A DNA stretch of 57,271 nt, filler included, from Hydrolagus affinis (Eukaryota): the NCBI GenBank assembly GCA_012026655.1. It is 4 parts of 4 records of this genome, joined end to end, with 100 filler letters (N's around TTAATTAATTAA, not from the genome) between each part and the next. Parts side by side here need not be neighbours in the genome. Positions count along the whole stretch, not along the records: positions 14,833 to 27,143 come from JAAILG010022123.1; 3 more parts are not named here. One strand, 5' to 3'. The notes beneath the pieces are model-generated. The model saw nothing but the letters and a program-made list of their open reading frames with translations. It made no database searches and was not told the origin of the DNA. A program made the position numbers and the translations under genes. This document shows, in pieces, positions 14,833 through 27,143 of this stretch (position 1 is the first letter of the stretch; each line of letters starts with the position of its first letter).

Positions 14833-15230
14833 GACAGGGCGAACTGCTGGGCAAGTTTCCTTACCTCTTACCTCTAATGCCTCTGTTTACCCGGCAGTAA
14901 GTAGGAGCAGTTGATCACTTTTCAAGGGATAACAATCCTTAAAAATAACTATCATAATTTGGTCACTGGATCTACGACAGTTTGTGGGACACCCTGAGTG
15001 GCGGTCGTGTTTTGTCCACAAATGTACAGTCACTTCACAATATATTCCGTGAAGCGCTTTGATTGGCTAGAAGACATGACAAGCGCTGTATCAAACGGAA
15101 CGATTACTATGATTGTGTTCAGAACTAAAGACAATGAACCAATCATGGAACTAGGAGTTATGTGTTACCGACTGGGCGGGGGGCTCACTGTGAGATGGCT
15201 TAAGTCGCATTGGATTTGACAAATTCCCAG

Positions 15231-16384
15231 AAAACTCAAAGACCTAAATATCAGGAAAGGACAGCGCACACCCAGGTGAGGAACACTAAGTTTAGATATT
15301 AGTCATTTATATCCGAAAACATTTTTGGATTAGAAAATAAAATGGAAAAACAGTTGTTTACCCCAATATTACTGTTGTATTTCACCCTCCTCGAATTGTT
15401 TAATTCCAGTTGCCTGGCTGACTGGCAGATCATGTAATTGGTAGAGTTATACAAACCCTTCACTACTTATCAAAATAATCATTCTTAATATGAATCTTAG
15501 AGACGAGTGATATATGTCCTCAGAAGCACAGCTTTGGAATTTTAGCGATTGTCGACTAACTGAGTTCCCATTTCTCTGTCAGCCTTATGGAAATGTATAG
15601 AAGCTTCTATTAATCCCATCTCAACATGAAAAAGAATTCTTAACTCCTAGTTTTTAAAAAGTAAACATTGTATAGGGAATGCTGGGGATTCTGAAAGCAT
15701 TTATTTGGGAGATTACTGCAGTCTGACAGCATTAATAAATTAGTTACATTTACAAATACTTGCTTTTCTATCCAAAGGGAGCAAACAGGAACAAGCCAAC
15801 ATATGCATCTCTGGATTTCTCTGGCTCTAAGAAAACAGGAAAGGCTAAACCTACCTACAAGAATACGGAATATGCCGAGGTAAGCGTGATAAACCATCTG
15901 GAGCTAAGAGTCAAGATATGTTAAAATACTAGGTGTCAAAGCTGATTATTGGTTTGTGTTAGGCATGCTCCCTATGCATTGCAATCAACATCTCCATTAT
16001 TGCAGCATGTCCAGGATGGTAGAAGACAATTTAGATGGACCTTGGTCTTTTACAAATATCTTCTATCTATCTAATAATATTTATTAACTGAATTATATAT
16101 TTATCACACATTTCATCAATCAATATAGCTGACATGTAACAACAACAAAATTACAGTTGTATAGAATTATAACTAGAAGAAAGACAATCAATGCAATCTT
16201 ATAAGTAGTATAAATATTTAGCAGAGGCGTAAAGTAACTAAAACAAAGATCTCACATTATACTGAACCTTTGTCTTTACTAGGTCAAACAAGGGGCAAAC
16301 AAGCTGACTTATGCTGCTCTGGATTTGAGTAGCTCAACGAAAATGGGAAAACCTAAATCCAACAATATGCAGAGCTACAGATGA
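15231..16384 (+). CDS. 3' cytoplasmic exons of a SIRP-alpha-like inhibitory IgSF receptor (exons 15231-15275, 15778-15879, 16283-16384)
   Basis: AG/GT-bounded phase-0 exons read KTQRPKYQERTAHTQ | GANRNKPTYASLDFSGSKKTGKAKPTYKNTEYAE | VKQGANKLTYAALDLSSSTKMGKPKSNNMQSYR*. The first exon has a weak acceptor and is the least certain. Confidence 0.72.
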
Positions 16385-17805
16385 AAACTACAAACGTATA
16401 ACAAAGATTGTCAAGAGGGAATCAGGATGATGTAACATAGAAGAATCTGTGTCCTTTCTTGCTGCCCCATTGGTATCTCTCAAGCACAACTGTGGCTATC
16501 AATGATTATTTACTTAGTTAAAAAAGGTAGTTACTTATTGGATAAATTATTTTAATGCTTGGCAGTGGATTTTCCCTCCTCTACACATTCCACCTCACAT
16601 GATCATACCACCAGTGCCACTGCCTCCTCTCAGCAAATAGTAGCCTCCATCAGGTAGATCAACACCACCAAAATTCAGAGAGCTATGAGTCATTCCTTCC
16701 CACCCTTGACCTTCAAAAACCTACATTAAGACTTATTAGTTCAGCACTCTATAGGAACTTTTACCTCCTTCCTCATCTATCAATTCAAAACTCTACCCAA
16801 ATTACAGAAATTTTCAATAGTGGTGTAAACAGATTTTATAACATTGTAATAATTTATTAAACATAAATTGTATTGATATCTTCATTACTCATTCTGTCTC
16901 TTCAGTATTAATGAAGTAACATTTGATGTGGTTATTATATGTCTGATTAAGAATATATGGCACCCCTCATCTACCATTGTTACAAGATTAACACGAGGGT
17001 GTTCAAACTGATCAAATACTGTATCTACAAAAAGTTACCTAATAGGAACCATCTAAATTTTTGACTGCATTGATTTTTTATGTCATTATATCATTATATC
17101 AGAAGTTTTCAACTCCTAAAATGAACAGGGTATGCAGTTTTTCAATTATTATGATCTATTATTTAACAGTAAAATGGTTGTGTTTCACTGTATGTGTGAC
17201 TATAGATAGCTATTATGCATATATTAATGCAACAATCGATATGAGCTACAAAACGGGATCTCTTCCATCAAATTTTTAAGTGTTTCCTGGTCCACTATTA
17301 CTAAATTTTCATGTCATGAAAATTTAAAACAATATAATAAATATTTACCATGGCACAGCACATTTCATGTCGGGAAGACATCCTAAAGTCCTCAATGGAC
17401 TTGTCTGTTACCCAAGCTGTGGGTGGGAGTGAAGGGAAGGGCAAAGGTGAATGAAAGGACAGTCAACTAGACTTCAAAGGGACCATGAAACAGGTGAGGG
17501 TGGGAGTGAATCAGAGCAACTTCATGATTGAGTGCCACAGAGTGGACACAGATAGGCTGAAAACCAGATTGCTTCAGTGCTCTGGGTCTGCTACTCACCT
17601 TGTTTAATTATTGCTGATGGAAATTCAGAGATTGGGTGTAGATAATCAATATATTGTGTAAGAGAGTGAACTTTGAATCACTTTATTTATTGGGGGCAAG
17701 TTCGCATTTTGTTCCTGAACTCAAATACTTTACATTGTGGCAATCAGCTCTCAGTAAACCATAAAGAGGCAGGTACTGTACACAGGACACTCAGTAACGA
17801 TGATC

Positions 17806-18450
17806 ATAATAATAATAATCCTTGCAATTGACATGTTGCTTTGCATGTCTTCTAGACGTCTCAAAGCGCTTCACAGAATATACTGTAAAGTGAATTGATT
17901 GTACTTTTGTGGGTGAAATGCAGCAGCCAATTGTGCACAGCAGTATCCCACAAACAGTCGTGGATTGAAATGACCAATTTTATTATTGTTTTTTTTAGGG
18001 ATTATTGTTAGGAGTGTGGAGTAAGGAAACTTGCCCAAGGTTTCACCCTGACCTGCCTGGATTCAAACACAGGTCTCGCGCTTGTGAGGCAAGTGCTCTA
18101 ACCACTGAGCAGCAGGATTCCACTATATAATAAGAATAATAACAATAATAATAATAATCCTTGCATTTGATATAGCGCTTTTCAAATCTTATTGATGTCT
18201 CAAAGCACTTCACAGAATATACTGTAAAATGAATTGAATGTTTATATTTGTGGGTGAAACGCGGCAGCGGATTGTGCATAGCGGTGTCCCACAAACAGTC
18301 ATGGATTGAAATGACAAATTTTTATTACAGTGTTGTGTTTTTTTGGATGGATTAGTATTGGGTAAGGAAACTTACCCAAGGTTTCACCCTGATCTGCCTG
18401 GATTTGAACACAGGTCTCACTCTTGTAAAGCGAGTGCTCTAACCACTGAG
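17806..18450 (-). mobile_element. Two tandem tRNA-derived SINE copies (representative of many copies in the window)
   Basis: Minus-strand head with A-box-like GCTCAGTGGTTAGAGC and B-box-like GTTTGAATCC, a conserved core and an (ATT)n tail. Related copies lie at about 6160-6440, 14560-14732, 26630-26880, 46700-46960 and 52480-53110. Confidence 0.8.
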
Positions 18451-18885
18451 TTACAGGAGCTCCAAATATTTGTACAGTGTCGGCAGGATGTCCTGAAGTG
18501 CTGGACAGTTAAGGATTGGCACCCAAACTGGTGAATGGGATCAAGAGGGGTAAAGGGCAGGGCGGGGAGGGTAGGGGTAGGAGGGTGACCAAAGGCAGAG
18601 TCAAAGAGGAGGGTCTTGAGGCGGGTCTTGAAGGAGGTAATGGTGGAAGGACTGCAGGATGGAGTTCCAACAGGTGGGGACAGAGTGACTGAAGGCCCAC
18701 CCGACAATGGTGGGGCAGATGAGGTGGGGGGAACATGAAGCAGGCTGGAGCCCAATGAGTGCATGGAGTAGACCGGTTGGTAGGGGGGTTAATAGGTCAC
18801 AGAGGTAGTGGGGAGGGTCAGGGGTGGGCAGATGGGGGAAGAGAGAGAGTACATGGAGGGCTTTGATGGTGAGGATCTGGATCTT
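18450..18885 (-). mobile_element. L2-type LINE 3' fragment ending in a hairpin
   Basis: Reverse strand reads SFKTRLKTLLFDSAFG, as in the other L2 3' ends. Confidence 0.7.
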
Positions 18886-19538
18886 GGATGATCCAGATCC
18901 TCACCATGTAACTCCTCCGTTACAACAATATGCCCTCCAGGTAGGGTAGGTCCTTAGAGCGCTTGCAACAGGAGTCAGAGGAATTGCTCCTCCATTATAA
19001 ACAAGCTTCCCCACCCCCCCACATACACACCAGATAAAAAGGCAAGAAGGATTATTAGTACAGTAATAATAATCCTTGCATTTGATGTAACTCTTTTCAG
19101 GTCTTCTAGATGTCTCAAAGCACTTCACAGAATATATTGTAAAGTGAATTGACTGTATATATAATATGTATAATGCTTGCATCTGATAAAGCACCATATT
19201 ATGTTATTGCTCCATCTCAAAGTACTTCACAGGTTATACTGTAAAGTGTAGTGACTGTGTATTTGGGGGGCGAAATGCAGCAGCAATTTGTATACAACAG
19301 TGCCCTACGGTCGCAGTCACAGTTTGAGTGCACAATTTTATTTGAAGGATATTTGGCCAGGGCACCATGAGAGAGAAAATCCTTTCTCTTTTTTAATGTC
19401 CACCTGAACAGGCAGACAGGACCTTTGCTTATTTTCTTCAATTGACAGCACCTCCGACACTATAACCACACAACCCAGGACTGCATTGCAGCTTACACAG
19501 TATAATATACTGTTTCAAAGTATACAGTACTATGTATT

Positions 19539-19882
19539 ATTAATAATAATACTGCATTGATGTCACGATTAATATTGCAACCATTCACTTCTCAGGGTTA
19601 TTGAGGGGTGGGGCTAGAACACACAAACCTTCTGACTCAGAAGAACCAAGGCTTGGCGACTTCAGAGTGTGTGTTGGGGTAACTATTGGAGTCTAACCAA
19701 TAAATCCACTTGCCATTCATATCACTGATCCCTGGCAAGTTTTCCTGCTGCTTGTCCATCTAGGACCACACTACCTGTTAGGACTCGCTTGCAAAGTTAA
19801 CAGAAGCTGAGAAGGGTTATTCCCTGCCCTCAGTGAATGGTTGCAATATTAATCATGACATCAATGCAGTATTATTATTAAT
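19539..19882. repeat. 51-bp inverted repeat pair around a 242-bp spacer (MITE-like or flanks of an inversion)
   Basis: 19539-19589 and 19832-19882 are reverse complements at 50/51 positions. Confidence 0.8.
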
Positions 19883-21289
19883 TCTGCCTATCTCCTCTTT
19901 TCCCATCTCACCGCATGCACCAGGTATGAGAAGCTTTGGGTACTTTTTGTTGTTCAGAGAAGTTAAGCAATCATGTGTGACTATGTTAGACAACCCAGCC
20001 TGGGGCAAAGAATATATCACTTGTTATCACATGTTCTGCTACTGGGTGTGATGAACTCTGCTATTTAAACCTGCATTGGCCTCTATCTCCCTGTTGCTAT
20101 CGTCTGCCGAACACAGGTAAATCTGTCCTGTGTTGTGTTCAGGAAATACCTAGATAGAATGCAGTTCTCAGTGAGATCTCAAAGGACAAAGTTCAAGCAT
20201 AAAAAGCTGATGTTCCTGGAGACCAAAATCGAGAGGATCCGCTGAGCTCTTATCTCCTCTCAAGGCAAGGCACTTCTGCCTCCAGCATTTCACCATTCCT
20301 GCTTCAATTATTTTTACCATGTCTCATGCATCTCGTTCTTCCAGTAGTCCTTTACAAAACCCAGGAATTGCTCCACTAACCGAACTCCCAAACATAGCCA
20401 GACCCCTTTCTCACACCTCTGACAGCTAAAGCTGTAAACTTCTTAGCTTCTTCTCAGCTCAGGCGCTGACTGCATCAATGTATTTCACACCACAGAGTCA
20501 ACCGAGAAACCTACAATCTTGTTTGACCATCAAGTTTGCAGCCTCTGCCCTCTCCCGCACCAAAACCCAACCTATCACCCAAATCCACCGTGGCTTCCCA
20601 CCATTTAAGCAACTTCCTGCAATAGGAATGGCTGGAATGCACCTTTACCCCAGGAATCAGGAGTCTAACTCCCATCTCTGCTTTATTATCCTACCTCACC
20701 ATGATAGAGCGAGCTATTAGTCATTCTGATGCCGCTTCTTGGAACTCCATTCTCTCGGGTTCTTTTCTTTGCTCCCCACATTCAAAGTGCCCCTCAAAAC
20801 CTATTGCTGACCTATCTTTTGGTTCATTTCTTCCTGCCTATTACCAATTCCACCTTCAAATTCCCCACATTTCGATTTACGATACCCAGACAGATATCTA
20901 TAGTGCTTTGGGGTGTCCTCGTATCGTGGATAGCACCTTGGACATGTAAATTGTATCCACTGGTAATTGTATTGCTAATTGTATTGCTGAATGTTCTGCT
21001 GATGTTCAGGTCATTTTCATTCACAAACTATCATCCTGACCAAATACCAACCTGACAAAAGAAAGTTGCATAAACGTTTCTTCCGAAATTCATTTTTTCT
21101 GGTTCGAATAAATCCAAGTTTAAACCCCAGTACACGATGGTCATCAAATAGATTAGAGGGAGCTCAATAATGTTATCCTTTCACCTACATGAAAGTTGAG
21201 GATTCCATTATAATTATTCCTATCTGCACATTAATATCCACTGTAAATTCTTCTTCTGATTTGTAATCCCATCTCTTCTACACACACCC

Positions 21290-23890
21290 TCAAATCCTCT
21301 CAGTACCACTCTCTCCTCCCTCTCCTTCCACCTGGAAACCTACCCGCATTTTCCTTGAAGACGTTCCCTTTCCAACAAAGCCCTCAGTATCCATGACCTC
21401 ATCCTGGATGAGCACATTGACATTCTTGGGCTTATGGAAACTGGCTGTCCTCTAATGACCCCGTCCCTCTAGTCGAAGCCTCCCCTCCAGGCTACACCTT
21501 CCACCACCACACCCCCCGCCCTAGCCTATGTGGTAGTGGGGTGGCCATCATCTCCAAAGCTTCCCTTGGTCTTTCTCCCAATGCCTCTGGCTGTTTGCCC
21601 TCTTTCGAGCACCTCACCCTCTACCATCTATCTCTTTCTCTAAAAAATATTCTGCTCTACTGCCCTCCTAAACCACTTTGGTCCTTCCTCTGATATTTCC
21701 ACTCTCCTCTCCTCCCTGTCCCACAGCTCTGAATACCTGCTCATCATGGGCAACTTCAAACTTCACCTAATCTCCCCCTGCATCACATCCTCCGATTTCA
21801 CTGCCCTCCTCTCCTCCCTAAACCTCACCCTCCATATCAACTCTCCAACCCATAACCATGGCAATGCACTCAACCTTGTCCTCACCCACGGCCTTGACAT
21901 CTCCAACCTCAACATTATGGACAAGGGTATCTTGGAACACTTGCTCACCTCCTTCTCCTCTCACATCTCTCTCTCCTCAACAAGCTCTCAACTGCACTCT
22001 TACACCCATGTAAACAGTCTTCCCCCTGTGACCCTCACAGAGGCCCTCACATCCTCTGACATCTTATCCCTCTGGCCTTCCACCTGCAGAGATGCTAAAG
22101 CAGCCATCCAGCTGTTGCACAATCGCCTCTCCCCCACCTTCAACTCTCTCATTCCCCTGAAGTCCACGATCATCTCCAAACCCACCCGATCGCCCTGGTA
22201 CAACAGTCATCTCCGCTCACAAAAGACATAGTCTCGACAGCTTGAGTGCAGGTGGCAGAAGCCGGGTTGACGGATCACTGCCTGCTGTGGCTCAAGCACC
22301 TCCACAGTTATCGCTATTCATGGTCACGAGCAAAAACAGCTTATTACTCAAACATCATTCTGGAGGGTAAAAACAGCCCCAAAGTCCTCTTTTCCACAAC
22401 CCACCACCTCCTACATGCACCTTCTCAGGCATCCTAAATCTTCACTTCAAATGTGAAGTGCGAGAAGGTCATGGTCTTCTCCTCCAAAATCCACAATATC
22501 CACCTGGCAGCCTCATCCTCCTGCCTCTCATCGCCCACCATCACCACCCACATTCCGTCCCCCTCACCTTCCCCATCATCAGCTTCTATCACTACTCCGT
22601 TCCTACAATCCAGTTTCCGCCCTACCCACAGTACAGAGACTGCGCTTGTGAAAGTCACAAGCAAGTCTCTATCTGTGACCAGGGCTCCCTCTGCCTCCTT
22701 GTCGTCCTGGACTCTTCAGCAACATTCGACACAGTCGACCACGCCATCCTCCTCCACCGCCTCCTCCGTTGTTCACCTCAGTGTGACTGCACTCGCCTGG
22801 TTTGAGTCCTACCTTACAAATCACCGGGAGTATATCGCCACAAATGGCTTTTCCTCCCGCTCTCACTCGGTTAAATGTGGGGTAACCCAAGCATCCATTC
22901 TTGGACCCCTCCTCTTCATAAACTATCCTCTTCCTTCTTGGTGACATCATCTGCAGACATGGGGTACACTACCACATGTATGCGGATGACACCCAATTCT
23001 ATTTTTCCGCCTCACTTTGCGACCCCTTGATGTACTGTCAGCCTGCCTGTCAGACATGAGGAGCTGGATGAGCGTGAATTTCCTGCACCTGTATGTTGAC
23101 AAGACGGAAGACATACTATTTGGCTCTCTTCATCATCTTCATTCACATGGCTCTCACCTCCTCCACCTTCATGACCTGCCCCTAAAACTCTCCAAACTGG
23201 TACGCAACCTTGGCGTCAGGTTCAACCCACAACTGTCCTTCCTCCCCCACATCCGGTCTCTCACCAGCACTGCTTTTTTCCACCTCCGACATTTTGCCCA
23301 TCTTTGGTAATAACTTGCCCCAAAAGCCGCTGAAACTCTGGTCCATGCCTTTGTCACCTCTCAGCTGGACTTTGCAAATCCACTCCTCCACCACAATCCA
23401 TAAAATCCAGCTCAGTCAGAACTCTGACGCCCGCGTTCTCACCCGGACCAAACTTCGCTCCCCCATTACCACAGTCCTTGCCAGATTCACTGGCTCCCTG
23501 TCCCGGAGAGGATCAATTTCAAGATCCTCACTCTTGGCTTCAAATCTCTCCAATCCTCTGCATCCCTTACCTCTCTGACCTCTTCTCTCCCCAAAACAGC
23601 ACCCGTTGCCTTCGCTCCTCCGGTTCAGGTCTCCTCCTCGTCTCCCAAATCCTCCGTTCCACAATCGGCGGCCGTGCCTTCAGCCACTGCGCCCCGAAGC
23701 TCTGGCACTCCCTTCCTCACTCCCTTTGCCTTGCTCCCTCTCTTCCTAGTTTTAGATCTCGGTTAAAGACCTTTCTGTTCGACTGCGCATTGGGTCACCT
23801 TATTCCCCTTCCCCCTGGCACGGACCCGGGGTCCGTTTTTGTGAAGCGCTCTGGAGGGCGCTCCATAAACCAAAGTTGTTGTTGTTGTTG
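21290..23890 (+). mobile_element. Degenerate L2-type LINE ORF2 (AP endonuclease + RT) with 3' tail
   Basis: Endonuclease-like LSIHDLILDEHIDILGLMET at about 21380, RT motifs LLVVLDSSATFDTVDH and HMYADDTQ, and a (GTT)n tail at about 23875-23893. Many stops and frameshifts. Confidence 0.85.
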
Positions 23891-24868
23891 TTGTAATCTC
23901 CTACAGTCAGGAAGTTTCCACCAAGGGAACCTAATTACTAATCAACAATTCTTCCTTACATTGTGTACAAAAAATACAATGACTTTCCGAATATCCCAGA
24001 AATCATTACATAGTTCTACTTGGAGACATACCTTCTTACTCCAATTCTAATATCCTTGACGATCAAAATGAGAATTATTATTACATGTTAGGTTTCCACA
24101 ATGAGTCTTGTTTTAATGCAGCAAATCGTTTCATTGCGAACAAGAACAATCTATTAGGATAATGTTTAATTTCAACTGAACGACATTTGTTCAGCTGTGA
24201 GAAATTTAAACGAACAGAAGTCAGGTTTAAAACTATCACGATTTAGCAACACACAACTTACAGGATTATGAAAAAAATGAACCAAATATCGGATTTGATC
24301 CATAAATTCCTAATTTTTTATAGAATAGTTTGGTTCTTTGGGCGTCCAATGGTTGAAAATACAGTAATTTGTTATAATAATAAGTGATTCTGAATATATT
24401 CAAATATATTTTTAAAATAATTGATTATTTCGATCTACCAGACTAACAATACCCCAATAGCACAACACAATATCTTAATGCATACGTTCTGAAAAGGTCC
24501 CTTCAAATGGCTCTGTTGGAGGGAACTGTTGGGAATGTTCTCCCACGAAATTAAACTTGTTTGTGTACGGTCACGAAAATAACAGTCAGACATTGCACTG
24601 AGGAGCTATACTAGTTAATAGTTCAAAGAGTAATAAAAGATGTATTGGTGTTTCAGATACAGTTCACCTTGTATCGTTATTGGCGTTAAATCATTTTTAG
24701 TCGCTCTTAATGTAGACATCAGTTTTTTATGAAAATGGAAACCAATTGTATTGCTCAATCTGCAGGGGCAGGACGTTAGGCGTCACTGACTTACATTCAT
24801 TTCAGCGTCTGCCACCCCTTGATGCAGACCAGCGGCGGGTCAGATAGTCTCAGACAGTGATCTGAGCC

Positions 24869-27143
24869 ATGGCAAGCGCTGCGTTTCACTATTTCTCTCT
24901 CGTGGGGTTACTTTCCACAGGTAGGTGCTCGGTTTGGTTAAAAAAAACTATGTATTTATGTCCTAAAGTACGCGCTCCGGGCGCTACCCTGAGAGAGAGA
25001 TTCGCTAGGTAAATGCAAAATGTTGTGAACGTAGTTTCGTTGCTTCACTTTCAACTCCCCGACCTCACGCTGTGTATCTTCTCTGTACTCGCTGTGATCG
25101 GTTCTGTATTTTACCCAATCAGTGTCTGAATTTATTCCTGATAGTTGCTGACGGTACTTTGATGAAAGTGACTCAACTCCCCAAACACACCGTCACTAAA
25201 GGAGGAAGCGTCACATTCCAGTGTGGCATTCCCTACTTTGAAGGCTCCCCACGTATTAAAGTGTACTGGTGGAAGCTTGGGGAGAGGGAGTACCTGCAAA
25301 CAAGGCCAGATCCCAGGAAAATATTTGGTTTCGAACAAGGAGGAAGCGGCTTCATTCAGCTCCTGGATGTGAATTTCCAGGACTCTGGAGTTTATCACTG
25401 CGCTCTGGTGTTACAGGGGAAAATAGCAGCAAATGGAACTGGATCCACTTTAACTGTTTGCCGTAAGTGTTAAACCAGCGTAGATCTGGATCATTGCTAT
25501 CTACACATGTTACCCAAACATAACTAACTAATACACTATACTCTGAAAAGAATCAAAAGTAGAATAAGACCTACATGTGTGTTTATCTTCTACTTTGGGG
25601 AAATGTTCCAGTTCCTGAAGAGGAATGGCATTCCCTGGTTACCTAATCCTGGAGAGTATAGGTTGGCAAGTGCCAAGGGTTGGGACCTGAGTCAGCTAAA
25701 GCCGCAAACTTGTCCCAGCAATTAAAAACTTGAAAACACTGTGTCCGGCAAGCTTCCTGCCGTGTGTGTGGGGCAGTCAGCCTGCCGCTTACTGACTAAA
25801 GTAAATAGGGGACATGAGTGGGAAGACTCTCTGCCCCCAGCACTGTCTGCCTCTGATCCTCGCTGATGAGCCGGGCTGGCTGGTCTGTCACCAGCAAAGC
25901 TTGAGAGGCTCTGAGGACCTGCCAACGTTAGGAATGGAAACACTGACACAGAATTGACTGAGTTGGAACATTGCGCCGCTGAGCGCGTCCTCGTAGAGCA
26001 GTTCAGTTCCAAGGAGACTCCATTCACCTCGATAGTGTAATCATTTAGTGGCTACAAACACGATAAACATGCCAGTAACCAAACTAACCCAAACCAAATA
26101 ATAATAATGAATTTTAAAATAATAATAATTCGTATCATTAGGAATATATACTGAGATTTATTCGCATCGAACTGTCCGAATAACACAATCGAGAATTGCA
26201 TAACATCTCTAGAATATCCTTGTAAAGGTGGGAAACACGAAATTTATCATGGATACTTTTAAGAAGATTGTGATAGTTTTTTTTTGCATTGATGTCAGCC
26301 ACTCGGCTGACTGAAAACATTGTGGAAATGAATCCTTACCTCGTTGACGGTTTAAATAGAAAATAGCAGCCGCGTTTTATTCTCGCTTGGGCTATCTTTT
26401 TTGGGTGAAGTCATTGACTTAAAGGTGAACTACATTCAATACTAACAATGTTGTTTCATTACTTTTGGAAACTGGGATTCCTGGAGATTAAATAAAATAT
26501 GCCGTTAAGTAAGAAATACATAAATCAGATCAATTTGCGGCAGAAAATGTAATCGGATATAAATCAGAATAAACGTTTCTCCAACTGAAGTTGTGTAATT
26601 CGGTTCCAATATGGAGGTTTGTATCGCAGTGGCTCGAGCCTCACAAGCGAGAGACCTGTGCTCGATTCCAGGCAGGCCTGAACCTTGGGCAAGGGTCCTC
26701 ACTCCTCACACCGGATTATAATCCCAGAAGAGGATCCACAACAATACATTGATCATAAATTGTCTGTGCGCAATTGGCCGCCGCGTTTCTACCACAAACG
26801 TACAAGTACCTTCTGTGAGGCGCTTGGAGACGTACAGAAGATGTGAAAAACACTATGTGAAATGCAAGGATTATTATTGTTATTACCTAATTTACAGTTC
26901 CGCCAACGTCGCTGAAGATAATCCCAAGATTTAGTCAACATAATACACTCGTGTCTCTGACTCTTGTGTGTCAAACGGCTGTGTATTACCCGAAGAATCT
27001 CACCCTGACTTGGTATAACAATGGCACCGAAATTACAACCGGAATAAATACCACTGAGCAGCAGCATCCAGATGGATTGTATAGGACTTCCAGCTCACTG
27101 GAGGTGGCATCACCTGTCTTGAATGGGACTGTTTATACCTGTA
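24869..27143 (+). CDS. Non-rearranging leader-VJ-C1 IgSF receptor gene (SIRP/VJC1-like), 3' part lost in gap (exons 24869-24920, 25145-25462, 26898-27143+)
   Basis: Leader MASAAFHYFSLVGLLST (phase 1). V exon has FQC, YWW, DSGVYHC and a germline-fused G strand NGTGSTLTV, followed by a GTAAGT donor and no RSS. The C1-set exon has LVC, YYPKNLTLTW, HPDGLYRTSSSL and VYTC. All exons are open and in phase. Confidence 0.88.

Follow-up and report, generated by a model that had tools for sequence, protein, structure and literature searches.

Does a chimaera genome hold receptor genes with germline-fused V and J among rearranging antigen-receptor segments? This question was raised by a stretch of 57,271 nucleotides, filler included, from Hydrolagus affinis (GenBank assembly GCA_012026655.1). 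We call this stretch the window; it consists of four parts of four records, joined end to end with filler letters between them. An earlier note on this DNA had proposed that one part (positions 14833-27143, from JAAILG010022123.1) carries tandem copies of an inhibitory VJ-C1 receptor, placed between blocks of T cell receptor (TCR) V segments and beside an IgM relic. We analysed this piece, which has N on both flanks. We hold with good confidence that it is the junction of two neighbouring same-strand members of a SIRP-like multigene receptor family of cartilaginous fish.

Exon structure of the two genes

The two genes, here gene A and gene B, both lie on the + strand in head-to-tail order. Gene A is represented by its last three cytoplasmic exons only, and gene B by its leader, VJ and C1 exons. 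The stop of gene A (16384) and the gene B ATG (24869) are 8.5 kb apart. The exon structure thus confirms the order described in the earlier note, an exon with an immunoreceptor tyrosine-based inhibitory motif (ITIM) followed 8.5 kb later on the same strand by the start of a VJ-C1 gene.

The leader exon of gene B (24869-24920, + strand, 52 nt) has its ATG in the context GCCATGG and ends at the donor CAG/GTAGGT (a slash marks the exon boundary). Its product, MASAAFHYFSLVGLLST, matches the leader of the Callorhinchus milii gene LOC103185890. The VJ exon (25145-25462, + strand) has the acceptor ...GATAG/ and the phase 1 donor C/GTAAGT, and is 75-76% identical to LOC103185890 at the amino acid level. 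The C1 exon (26898-27143, + strand; 78% amino acid identity) has the acceptor ...TTTACAG/, stays open through 27143 and is cut at the piece edge after ...VYTC. All exon junctions are in phase 1, with a split leader of the kind known from Ig and TCR genes. In Pfam, the VJ exon matches V-set (E 2.8e-7) up to the end of the profile and thus includes the J-like G strand GTGSTLTV. The C1 exon, which reads LPPTSLKII ... VYTC, matches C1-set (E 5.8e-12).

Gene B agrees with the hallmarks of the family described below. The V domain contains VYWWK and NGTGSTLTV, corresponding to YWWK and GxG[ST]x[LIV]x[VI], and is directly followed by a C1-set domain that fits the family pattern (starting VPPTPLK and ending YxCxVxH) as far as the cut. 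The J is fused in the germline with a GT splice donor directly 3', in contrast to a rearranging-type V exon with a recombination signal sequence (RSS) and a separate J; no RSS was found anywhere in the piece. Gene B looks intact as far as the piece reaches. We also observed a Cys at the extreme end of its VJ exon (TLTVC/; V-C1 junction 25458-25462 / 26898). This Cys is common to some C. milii members and is replaced by His or Tyr in others; it could form an interchain disulfide.

The exons of gene A, which we term b, c and d, match the cassette exons of LOC103185890 that carry xYAxLDL and TEYAx[VI], the hallmark of the family tail. Exon b (15171-15275, + strand) is the membrane-proximal ITIM unit; it is orthologous to exon b of LOC103185890 (74% amino acid identity) and is disabled. 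Exon c (15778-15879, + strand) comprises 34 codons with PTYASL and TEYAE/, and is 72% identical to its C. milii counterpart at the amino acid level (tblastn E 1.5e-9). It lies within a 1154-bp DNA alignment to C. milii that includes intron sequence (72.6% identity, E 0), its acceptor AAAG/ and donor GAG/GTAAGC are conserved there, and it has zero differences to a related genome, X8. Exon d (16283-16384, + strand) is the last coding exon; it has the conserved acceptor TACTAG/, finishes TEYAE/V, and contains LTYAAL and the stop TGA (16382-16384). We considered exon c as a terminal exon that is read through to a stop at 15922-15924 and rejected this, since the donor at 15879/15880 is conserved and exon d follows. 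As this donor splices to exon d, the tail that had been read up to 15924 is intron beyond 15879. The ITIM tail of the earlier note is thus a real cytoplasmic exon (15778-15879), although an internal and not the last one, with exon b upstream and exon d downstream.

A receptor family of cartilaginous fish

We used the V exon of gene B as the query of an exhaustive HMMER search against 1.84 billion representatives, which returned 80 proteins at E<=1e-10, with P0001 (76% identity) ranking first. At least 60 relatives with a single V share the layout of leader, VJ, C1 and transmembrane (TM) segment, followed by a tail with tyrosine motifs or by a short tail. In the full-length relatives, the V domain is 50-76% identical to gene B and the tails are built from the repeated unit xTYAxLDL ... 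KNTEYAEV. The family is recognized by a VJ domain with YWWK and GxG[ST]xLxV, one C1 domain ending YxCxVxH (two in few members) and a TM segment. The tail of the long-tailed members has 75-150 residues with units such as VxYAxLDL ... ERTVYAQ ... LTYAALDL ... KNTEYAEV. It is encoded by short cassette exons of 34-35 codons, apparently in phase 0, each with ITIM-type or immunoreceptor tyrosine-based switch motif (ITSM)-type tyrosine motifs. These full-length proteins bear out the proposed layout of leader, VJ, C1, optional second C1, TM and ITIM tail, and they place the tail and the VJ-C1 exons in one family.

The earlier note had also asked for paired activating members with a short tail and a charged TM residue. 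Candidates for such forms exist: P0165, P0040, P0025, P0081 and P0129 have short tails, and their conserved TM segment ends in Asp/Glu-His and has an Arg close to its beginning. A further short-tailed protein, P0060, keeps the Asp-His end and has no Arg. The TM pattern (R/H-F-x-L ... I-I/V-V/M-D/E-H) was found in both holocephalans and elasmobranchs. It is the pattern expected for pairing with adaptors that carry an ITAM (immunoreceptor tyrosine-based activation motif), which makes the short-tailed members candidate activating partners of the long-tailed forms.

All named members of the family come from cartilaginous fish, namely from the genera Callorhinchus, Heptranchias, Heterodontus, Scyliorhinus, Mustelus, Carcharodon, Hemiscyllium, Stegostoma, Chiloscyllium, Cetorhinus, Amblyraja, Pristis and Mobula. 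The labels they bear were assigned automatically and do not agree with each other, ranging from SIRPα-like and SIRPβ1-like to tapasin-related-like, Ig lambda-1 light chain-like and NCR3 ligand 1-like. Our literature search found no paper describing this chondrichthyan VJ-C1 family. The family is thus already annotated in public genomes, automatically only, and the window adds a new pair of members.

Orthology to Callorhinchus milii and the origin of the gene pair

The closest comparison is offered by C. milii, where at least 13 genes of the family form a cluster on scaffold MU249845.1 (15.257-15.824 Mb, about 570 kb). The cluster is divided into two oppositely oriented sub-arrays, and pseudogene fragments lie among the genes. 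Within the arrays the genes are head-to-tail, with 7-10 kb separating the last cytoplasmic exon of a gene from the V exon that follows; at locus L002, which holds LOC103185890, the V-to-V distance is 13.56 kb.

By BLASTN, the piece is colinear with L002 in two blocks, with about 72% DNA identity including non-coding sequence. A non-coding identity of this level over kilobases fits a holocephalan source distinct from C. milii. LOC103185890 is covered by the first block (20144-27143) from its upstream region through leader and V to C1, and by the second (14835-17452) over exons b-d and 2.5 kb downstream. In a maximum-likelihood tree of V plus C1, gene B is paired with P0001 at 100/99 support. 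Judged from these alignments and the tree, we conclude that gene B is the orthologue of LOC103185890. The tail exons of gene A are 69-74% identical to LOC103185890 at the amino acid level, whereas the C. milii paralogues reach only 47-66% identity to it. The tail of gene A and the DNA downstream of it thus match the 3' end of gene B's own orthologue, so that gene A and gene B look like tandem copies. The downstream flank of a gene is joined to the upstream flank of the same gene at the period of the array, and the simplest reading of such an arrangement is a tandem duplication. Most likely, then, the two genes are lineage-specific tandem copies with a unit of about 13.5 kb, as far as the alignments tell. 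The same spacing and orientation occur in the C. milii cluster, so that the earlier proposal of tandem paralogues is supported, with the tail corrected.

The same alignments could be read as one gene only, with the contig being a circular permutation or a false join at a short interspersed element (SINE) and the tail being gene B's own 3' end. The two halves of the piece match one and the same C. milii gene to an equal degree (about 72% DNA identity), and both piece ends fall within the same 1.2-kb interval of LOC103185890, between C1 and exon b. Moreover, the spacer is rich in SINEs: the join between the downstream sequence of gene A and the upstream sequence of gene B crosses SINE copies, and independent contigs of X8 do not bridge it. 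However, a random false join is unlikely to give the right orientation together with the 13.5-kb period of the C. milii array, and the contig has the shape that a real tandem-duplication junction yields. C. milii itself shows recent copying of the V of LOC103185890, of which a 95%-identical partial copy lies at L004 7123-7302. We therefore regard a single gene as an unlikely explanation and retain the tandem pair.

LOC103185890 shares its exon plan, splice phases, motifs and array spacing with the window genes. C. milii differs in having one copy where the window has two, and in having no dead exon b, no frameshift in exon d and no 2.6-kb retrotransposon at this place. In the assembly GCA_018977255.1, the C1 exon of LOC103185890 changes frame at about 9977-9980 of L002, so that the current RefSeq model has 201 amino acids (XP_007902823.2) compared to 392 in the older one; this reflects an error in the assembly or else a broken allele. 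Elsewhere in the C. milii cluster we observed V and tail fragments with stops (L004 21754-21954; L002 3449-3610 on the minus strand; L009 6651-6752). Together with the partial V copy, these fragments are signs of ongoing duplication and decay.

Repeats between the genes

Two segments of the window upstream of and reaching into gene B (20557-21268 and 23900-25664) align to adjoining sequence in C. milii (L002 6412-7139 and 7149-9046). Since the flanks of 21269-23899 adjoin there, this 2.6-kb insertion, about 1 kb upstream of the gene B ATG, is lineage-specific. The inserted sequence (+ strand) is C-rich and has broken frames with FRPTHSTETAL, LDSSATFDTVDH and YADDTQ, which we take to be reverse-transcriptase-like motifs. 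Pfam gave no reverse-transcriptase match on the frames of the insertion, which are too broken. It is probably a decayed non-LTR retrotransposon, that is a 5'-truncated long interspersed element (LINE).

The intergenic spacer at 17790-19340 (without strand assignment; repeat families D1-D3 and I1-I3) is rich in SINEs, with a tandem pair of copies (17790-18128 and 18129-18464) and a further copy at 19044-19340. The same SINE is found inverted in the V-C1 intron of gene B (26612-26885) and again at about 14900-15115. The SINE family has many copies in the C. milii loci and a very high read depth in every DNA and single-cell RNA run. An Rfam scan of the piece, the SINE copies included, gave no match.

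Decay of the gene A tail

The cytoplasmic exons of gene A show different states of preservation. Exon b has three lesions: its acceptor reads CG in place of AG (15169-15170), the Tyr codon of its ITIM has changed from TAT to the stop TAA (15201-15203), and its second Tyr codon from TAC to CAC (15267-15269). Among the six aligned C. milii paralogues, all keep both Tyr codons and five keep the acceptor, the sixth using another AG. In exon d, a deletion of 10 bp after 16361, seen in comparison to C. milii and to the X8 DNA contigs, causes a frameshift by which the last Tyr motif is lost. The X8 genome, which differs from the window by 1-2%, carries ACAAGAATAC at 16361/16362 and thus has an intact exon d ending ...KNTQYAELQMKTTNV. 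As these 10 bases are present in X8, the deletion is recent or polymorphic.

Exon b is 105 nt long, so that skipping it keeps the frame; the resulting tail would read PTYASL ... TEYAEV ... LTYAAL ... stop. This leaves two readings of gene A: a pseudogene, or a receptor whose tail has been shortened. A comparable change was observed in C. milii, where exon b of P0011 (XP_042196465.1; L004 15377-15484) has an in-frame TAG after the first ITIM and the protein ends there; it is another member that shortens its tail by point mutation. With regard to the term inhibitory in the earlier note, it can be inferred for gene B from orthology, its tail lying beyond the piece, and it is weakened for gene A, where one ITIM exon is dead and another frameshifted. 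We conclude that gene A and gene B have the ordinary history of a paired-receptor cluster that evolves by birth and death.

Comparison to SIRP and proposed function

To call the family SIRP-like, as the earlier note did, is fair. In an AlphaFold model of the gene B orthologue, V, C1 and the TM helix are predicted with confidence and the tail is disordered. With this model, SIRPα is the nearest reviewed protein by Foldseek (E 2e-18), above PD-L1, butyrophilins and TAPBPL, and it also clusters nearest by language-model features (0.97). The resemblance to SIRPα/SHPS-1 and SIRPβ extends to the architecture, with a VJ-type V followed by a C1-set domain, a single TM segment and a tail alternating xTYAxL and xEYAx[VI], as well as to the presence of short-tailed partners with a charged TM residue. 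However, SIRP proper has two C1-set domains, whereas one is visible in gene B, and its orthologue and most relatives have one before the TM segment. Identity is below 25%, the tails resemble each other at the level of motifs only, and the family was found in cartilaginous fish only.

Two further searches did not help to place the family. When the V exon was searched as a single sequence against the PDB, the top matches were I-set domains of Robo and contactin and antibody light chains. Foldseek with the orthologue's AF2 model against the PDB was non-discriminating, as antibody light chains and TCR β chains filled the list.

By analogy with SIRPα, the V domain would bind a ligand, and the tail tyrosines, when phosphorylated, would recruit SHP-1/SHP-2, which in turn would damp the cell. 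Short-tailed members may act as activating partners by pairing with ITAM adaptors. On this analogy, the family would work like SIRP, and it lacks the two C1 domains of SIRP proper.

A similar organization is known from other vertebrates. Teleost NITR, mammalian KIR/LILR and chicken PRARP are multigene paired receptors with inhibitory and activating members in tandem clusters that undergo birth-and-death evolution. In NITR and PRARP the V domain is VJ-like, as in the chondrichthyan family. The domain make-up differs from this family in NITR, which combines V with an I-type domain, and in KIR/LILR, which have C2-type domains.

Besides the unbridged join, several points weigh against reading the piece as a pair of neighbouring SIRP-like receptor genes. 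Neither gene is complete in the piece and the TM exon lies outside it, so that neither gene is directly typed as inhibitory or activating. In a comparison of the family profile to the PDB, Ig light chains, UrIg2 (9dmx, E 8e-33) and SIRPα (2wng, E 1.5e-30) scored about equally. Homology of the family tail to the SIRPα tail would have to be argued from motif resemblance only, and when relatives outside the family were sought with the tail alone, the protein search returned two family members and nothing else. A weaker point is that none of the reads of three single-cell RNA runs (about 30% of each run read; tissue unknown) mapped to exons b-d; within the piece, the reads of these runs fell on SINEs only.

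Antigen-receptor segments and UrIg

We return to the possibility that the VJ-C1 receptor array lies inside the antigen-receptor complex, with its genes interspersed among rearranging TCR V segments and an IgM relic. Within the window, its support is the layout of the joined sequence. As the window was joined from unrelated pieces, the neighbouring TCR V blocks carry no positional information, and the claim that the contig lies between TCR V blocks and beside an IgM relic is not supported: the adjacency is an artefact of joining, and the piece has no RSS. The best solved match of the gene B C1 exon by total score is UrIg2, and UrIg2, a non-rearranging VJ-C1 gene, lies within the elasmobranch antigen-receptor complex (PMC12227049). 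Against this stands the C. milii cluster: in 250 kb of it, covering nine loci, no RSS-like site was found even by a loose pattern, and every Ig exon found belongs to the SIRP-like family. We thus regard interleaving with TCR segments as very unlikely.

The match to UrIg2 also raises the question of orthology between the two holocephalan genes and UrIg or UrIg2, which are 'antibody-like' shark genes without rearrangement (Flajnik et al. 2023, 2025; PDB 9dmx). Like the present family, UrIg and UrIg2 occur in cartilaginous fish, and in both groups the leader is split and a VJ exon that does not rearrange precedes C1. UrIg2 is matched by the family profile with the E value given above, and by the C1 exon alone at 1.9e-14. 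However, this profile gives similar scores to Ig light chains and SIRPα, and the V of UrIg2 is not among the 60 best PDB matches of the gene B V alone. In UrIg and UrIg2, VJ is followed by three or more C1 domains (PMC12227049), whereas the SIRP-like family has one C1, a TM segment, tails with tyrosine motifs and many tandem copies. UrIg2 also forms homodimers, and linkage to the major histocompatibility complex (MHC) or to the antigen-receptor complex is a mark of UrIg and UrIg2. Furthermore, elasmobranchs that have UrIg and UrIg2 carry the SIRP-like family as separate genes. We conclude that the family is distinct from UrIg and UrIg2; that the two genes are their orthologues is highly improbable.

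Implications

The stitched window hinted at the origin of antigen receptors; its actual content is an ordinary pair of genes from an annotated receptor family. A broader proposal would be that the family is an undescribed innate paired-receptor system of all cartilaginous fish with a KIR- or NITR-like role, encoded in a cluster that might belong to a region paralogous to the MHC or to an antigen-receptor region, and related to the VJ-C1 precursor of Ig and TCR beside UrIg and UrIg2. We give this proposal a low probability. As an example of an MHC-paralogous placement, MU249845.1 may correspond to NW_024704749, the para-9/14 scaffold of Veríssimo et al. 2023. If the system did lie in an MHC-paralogous or antigen-receptor region, the family would join UrIg and UrIg2 among the surviving relatives of the VJ-C1 precursor.

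The family spans sharks, rays and chimaeras and comprises long-tailed forms of the inhibitory type and short-tailed forms of the activating type. Within it, the piece from H. affinis shows birth-and-death evolution directly, as a lineage-specific tandem copy that is losing its cassette-like ITIM exons one by one.

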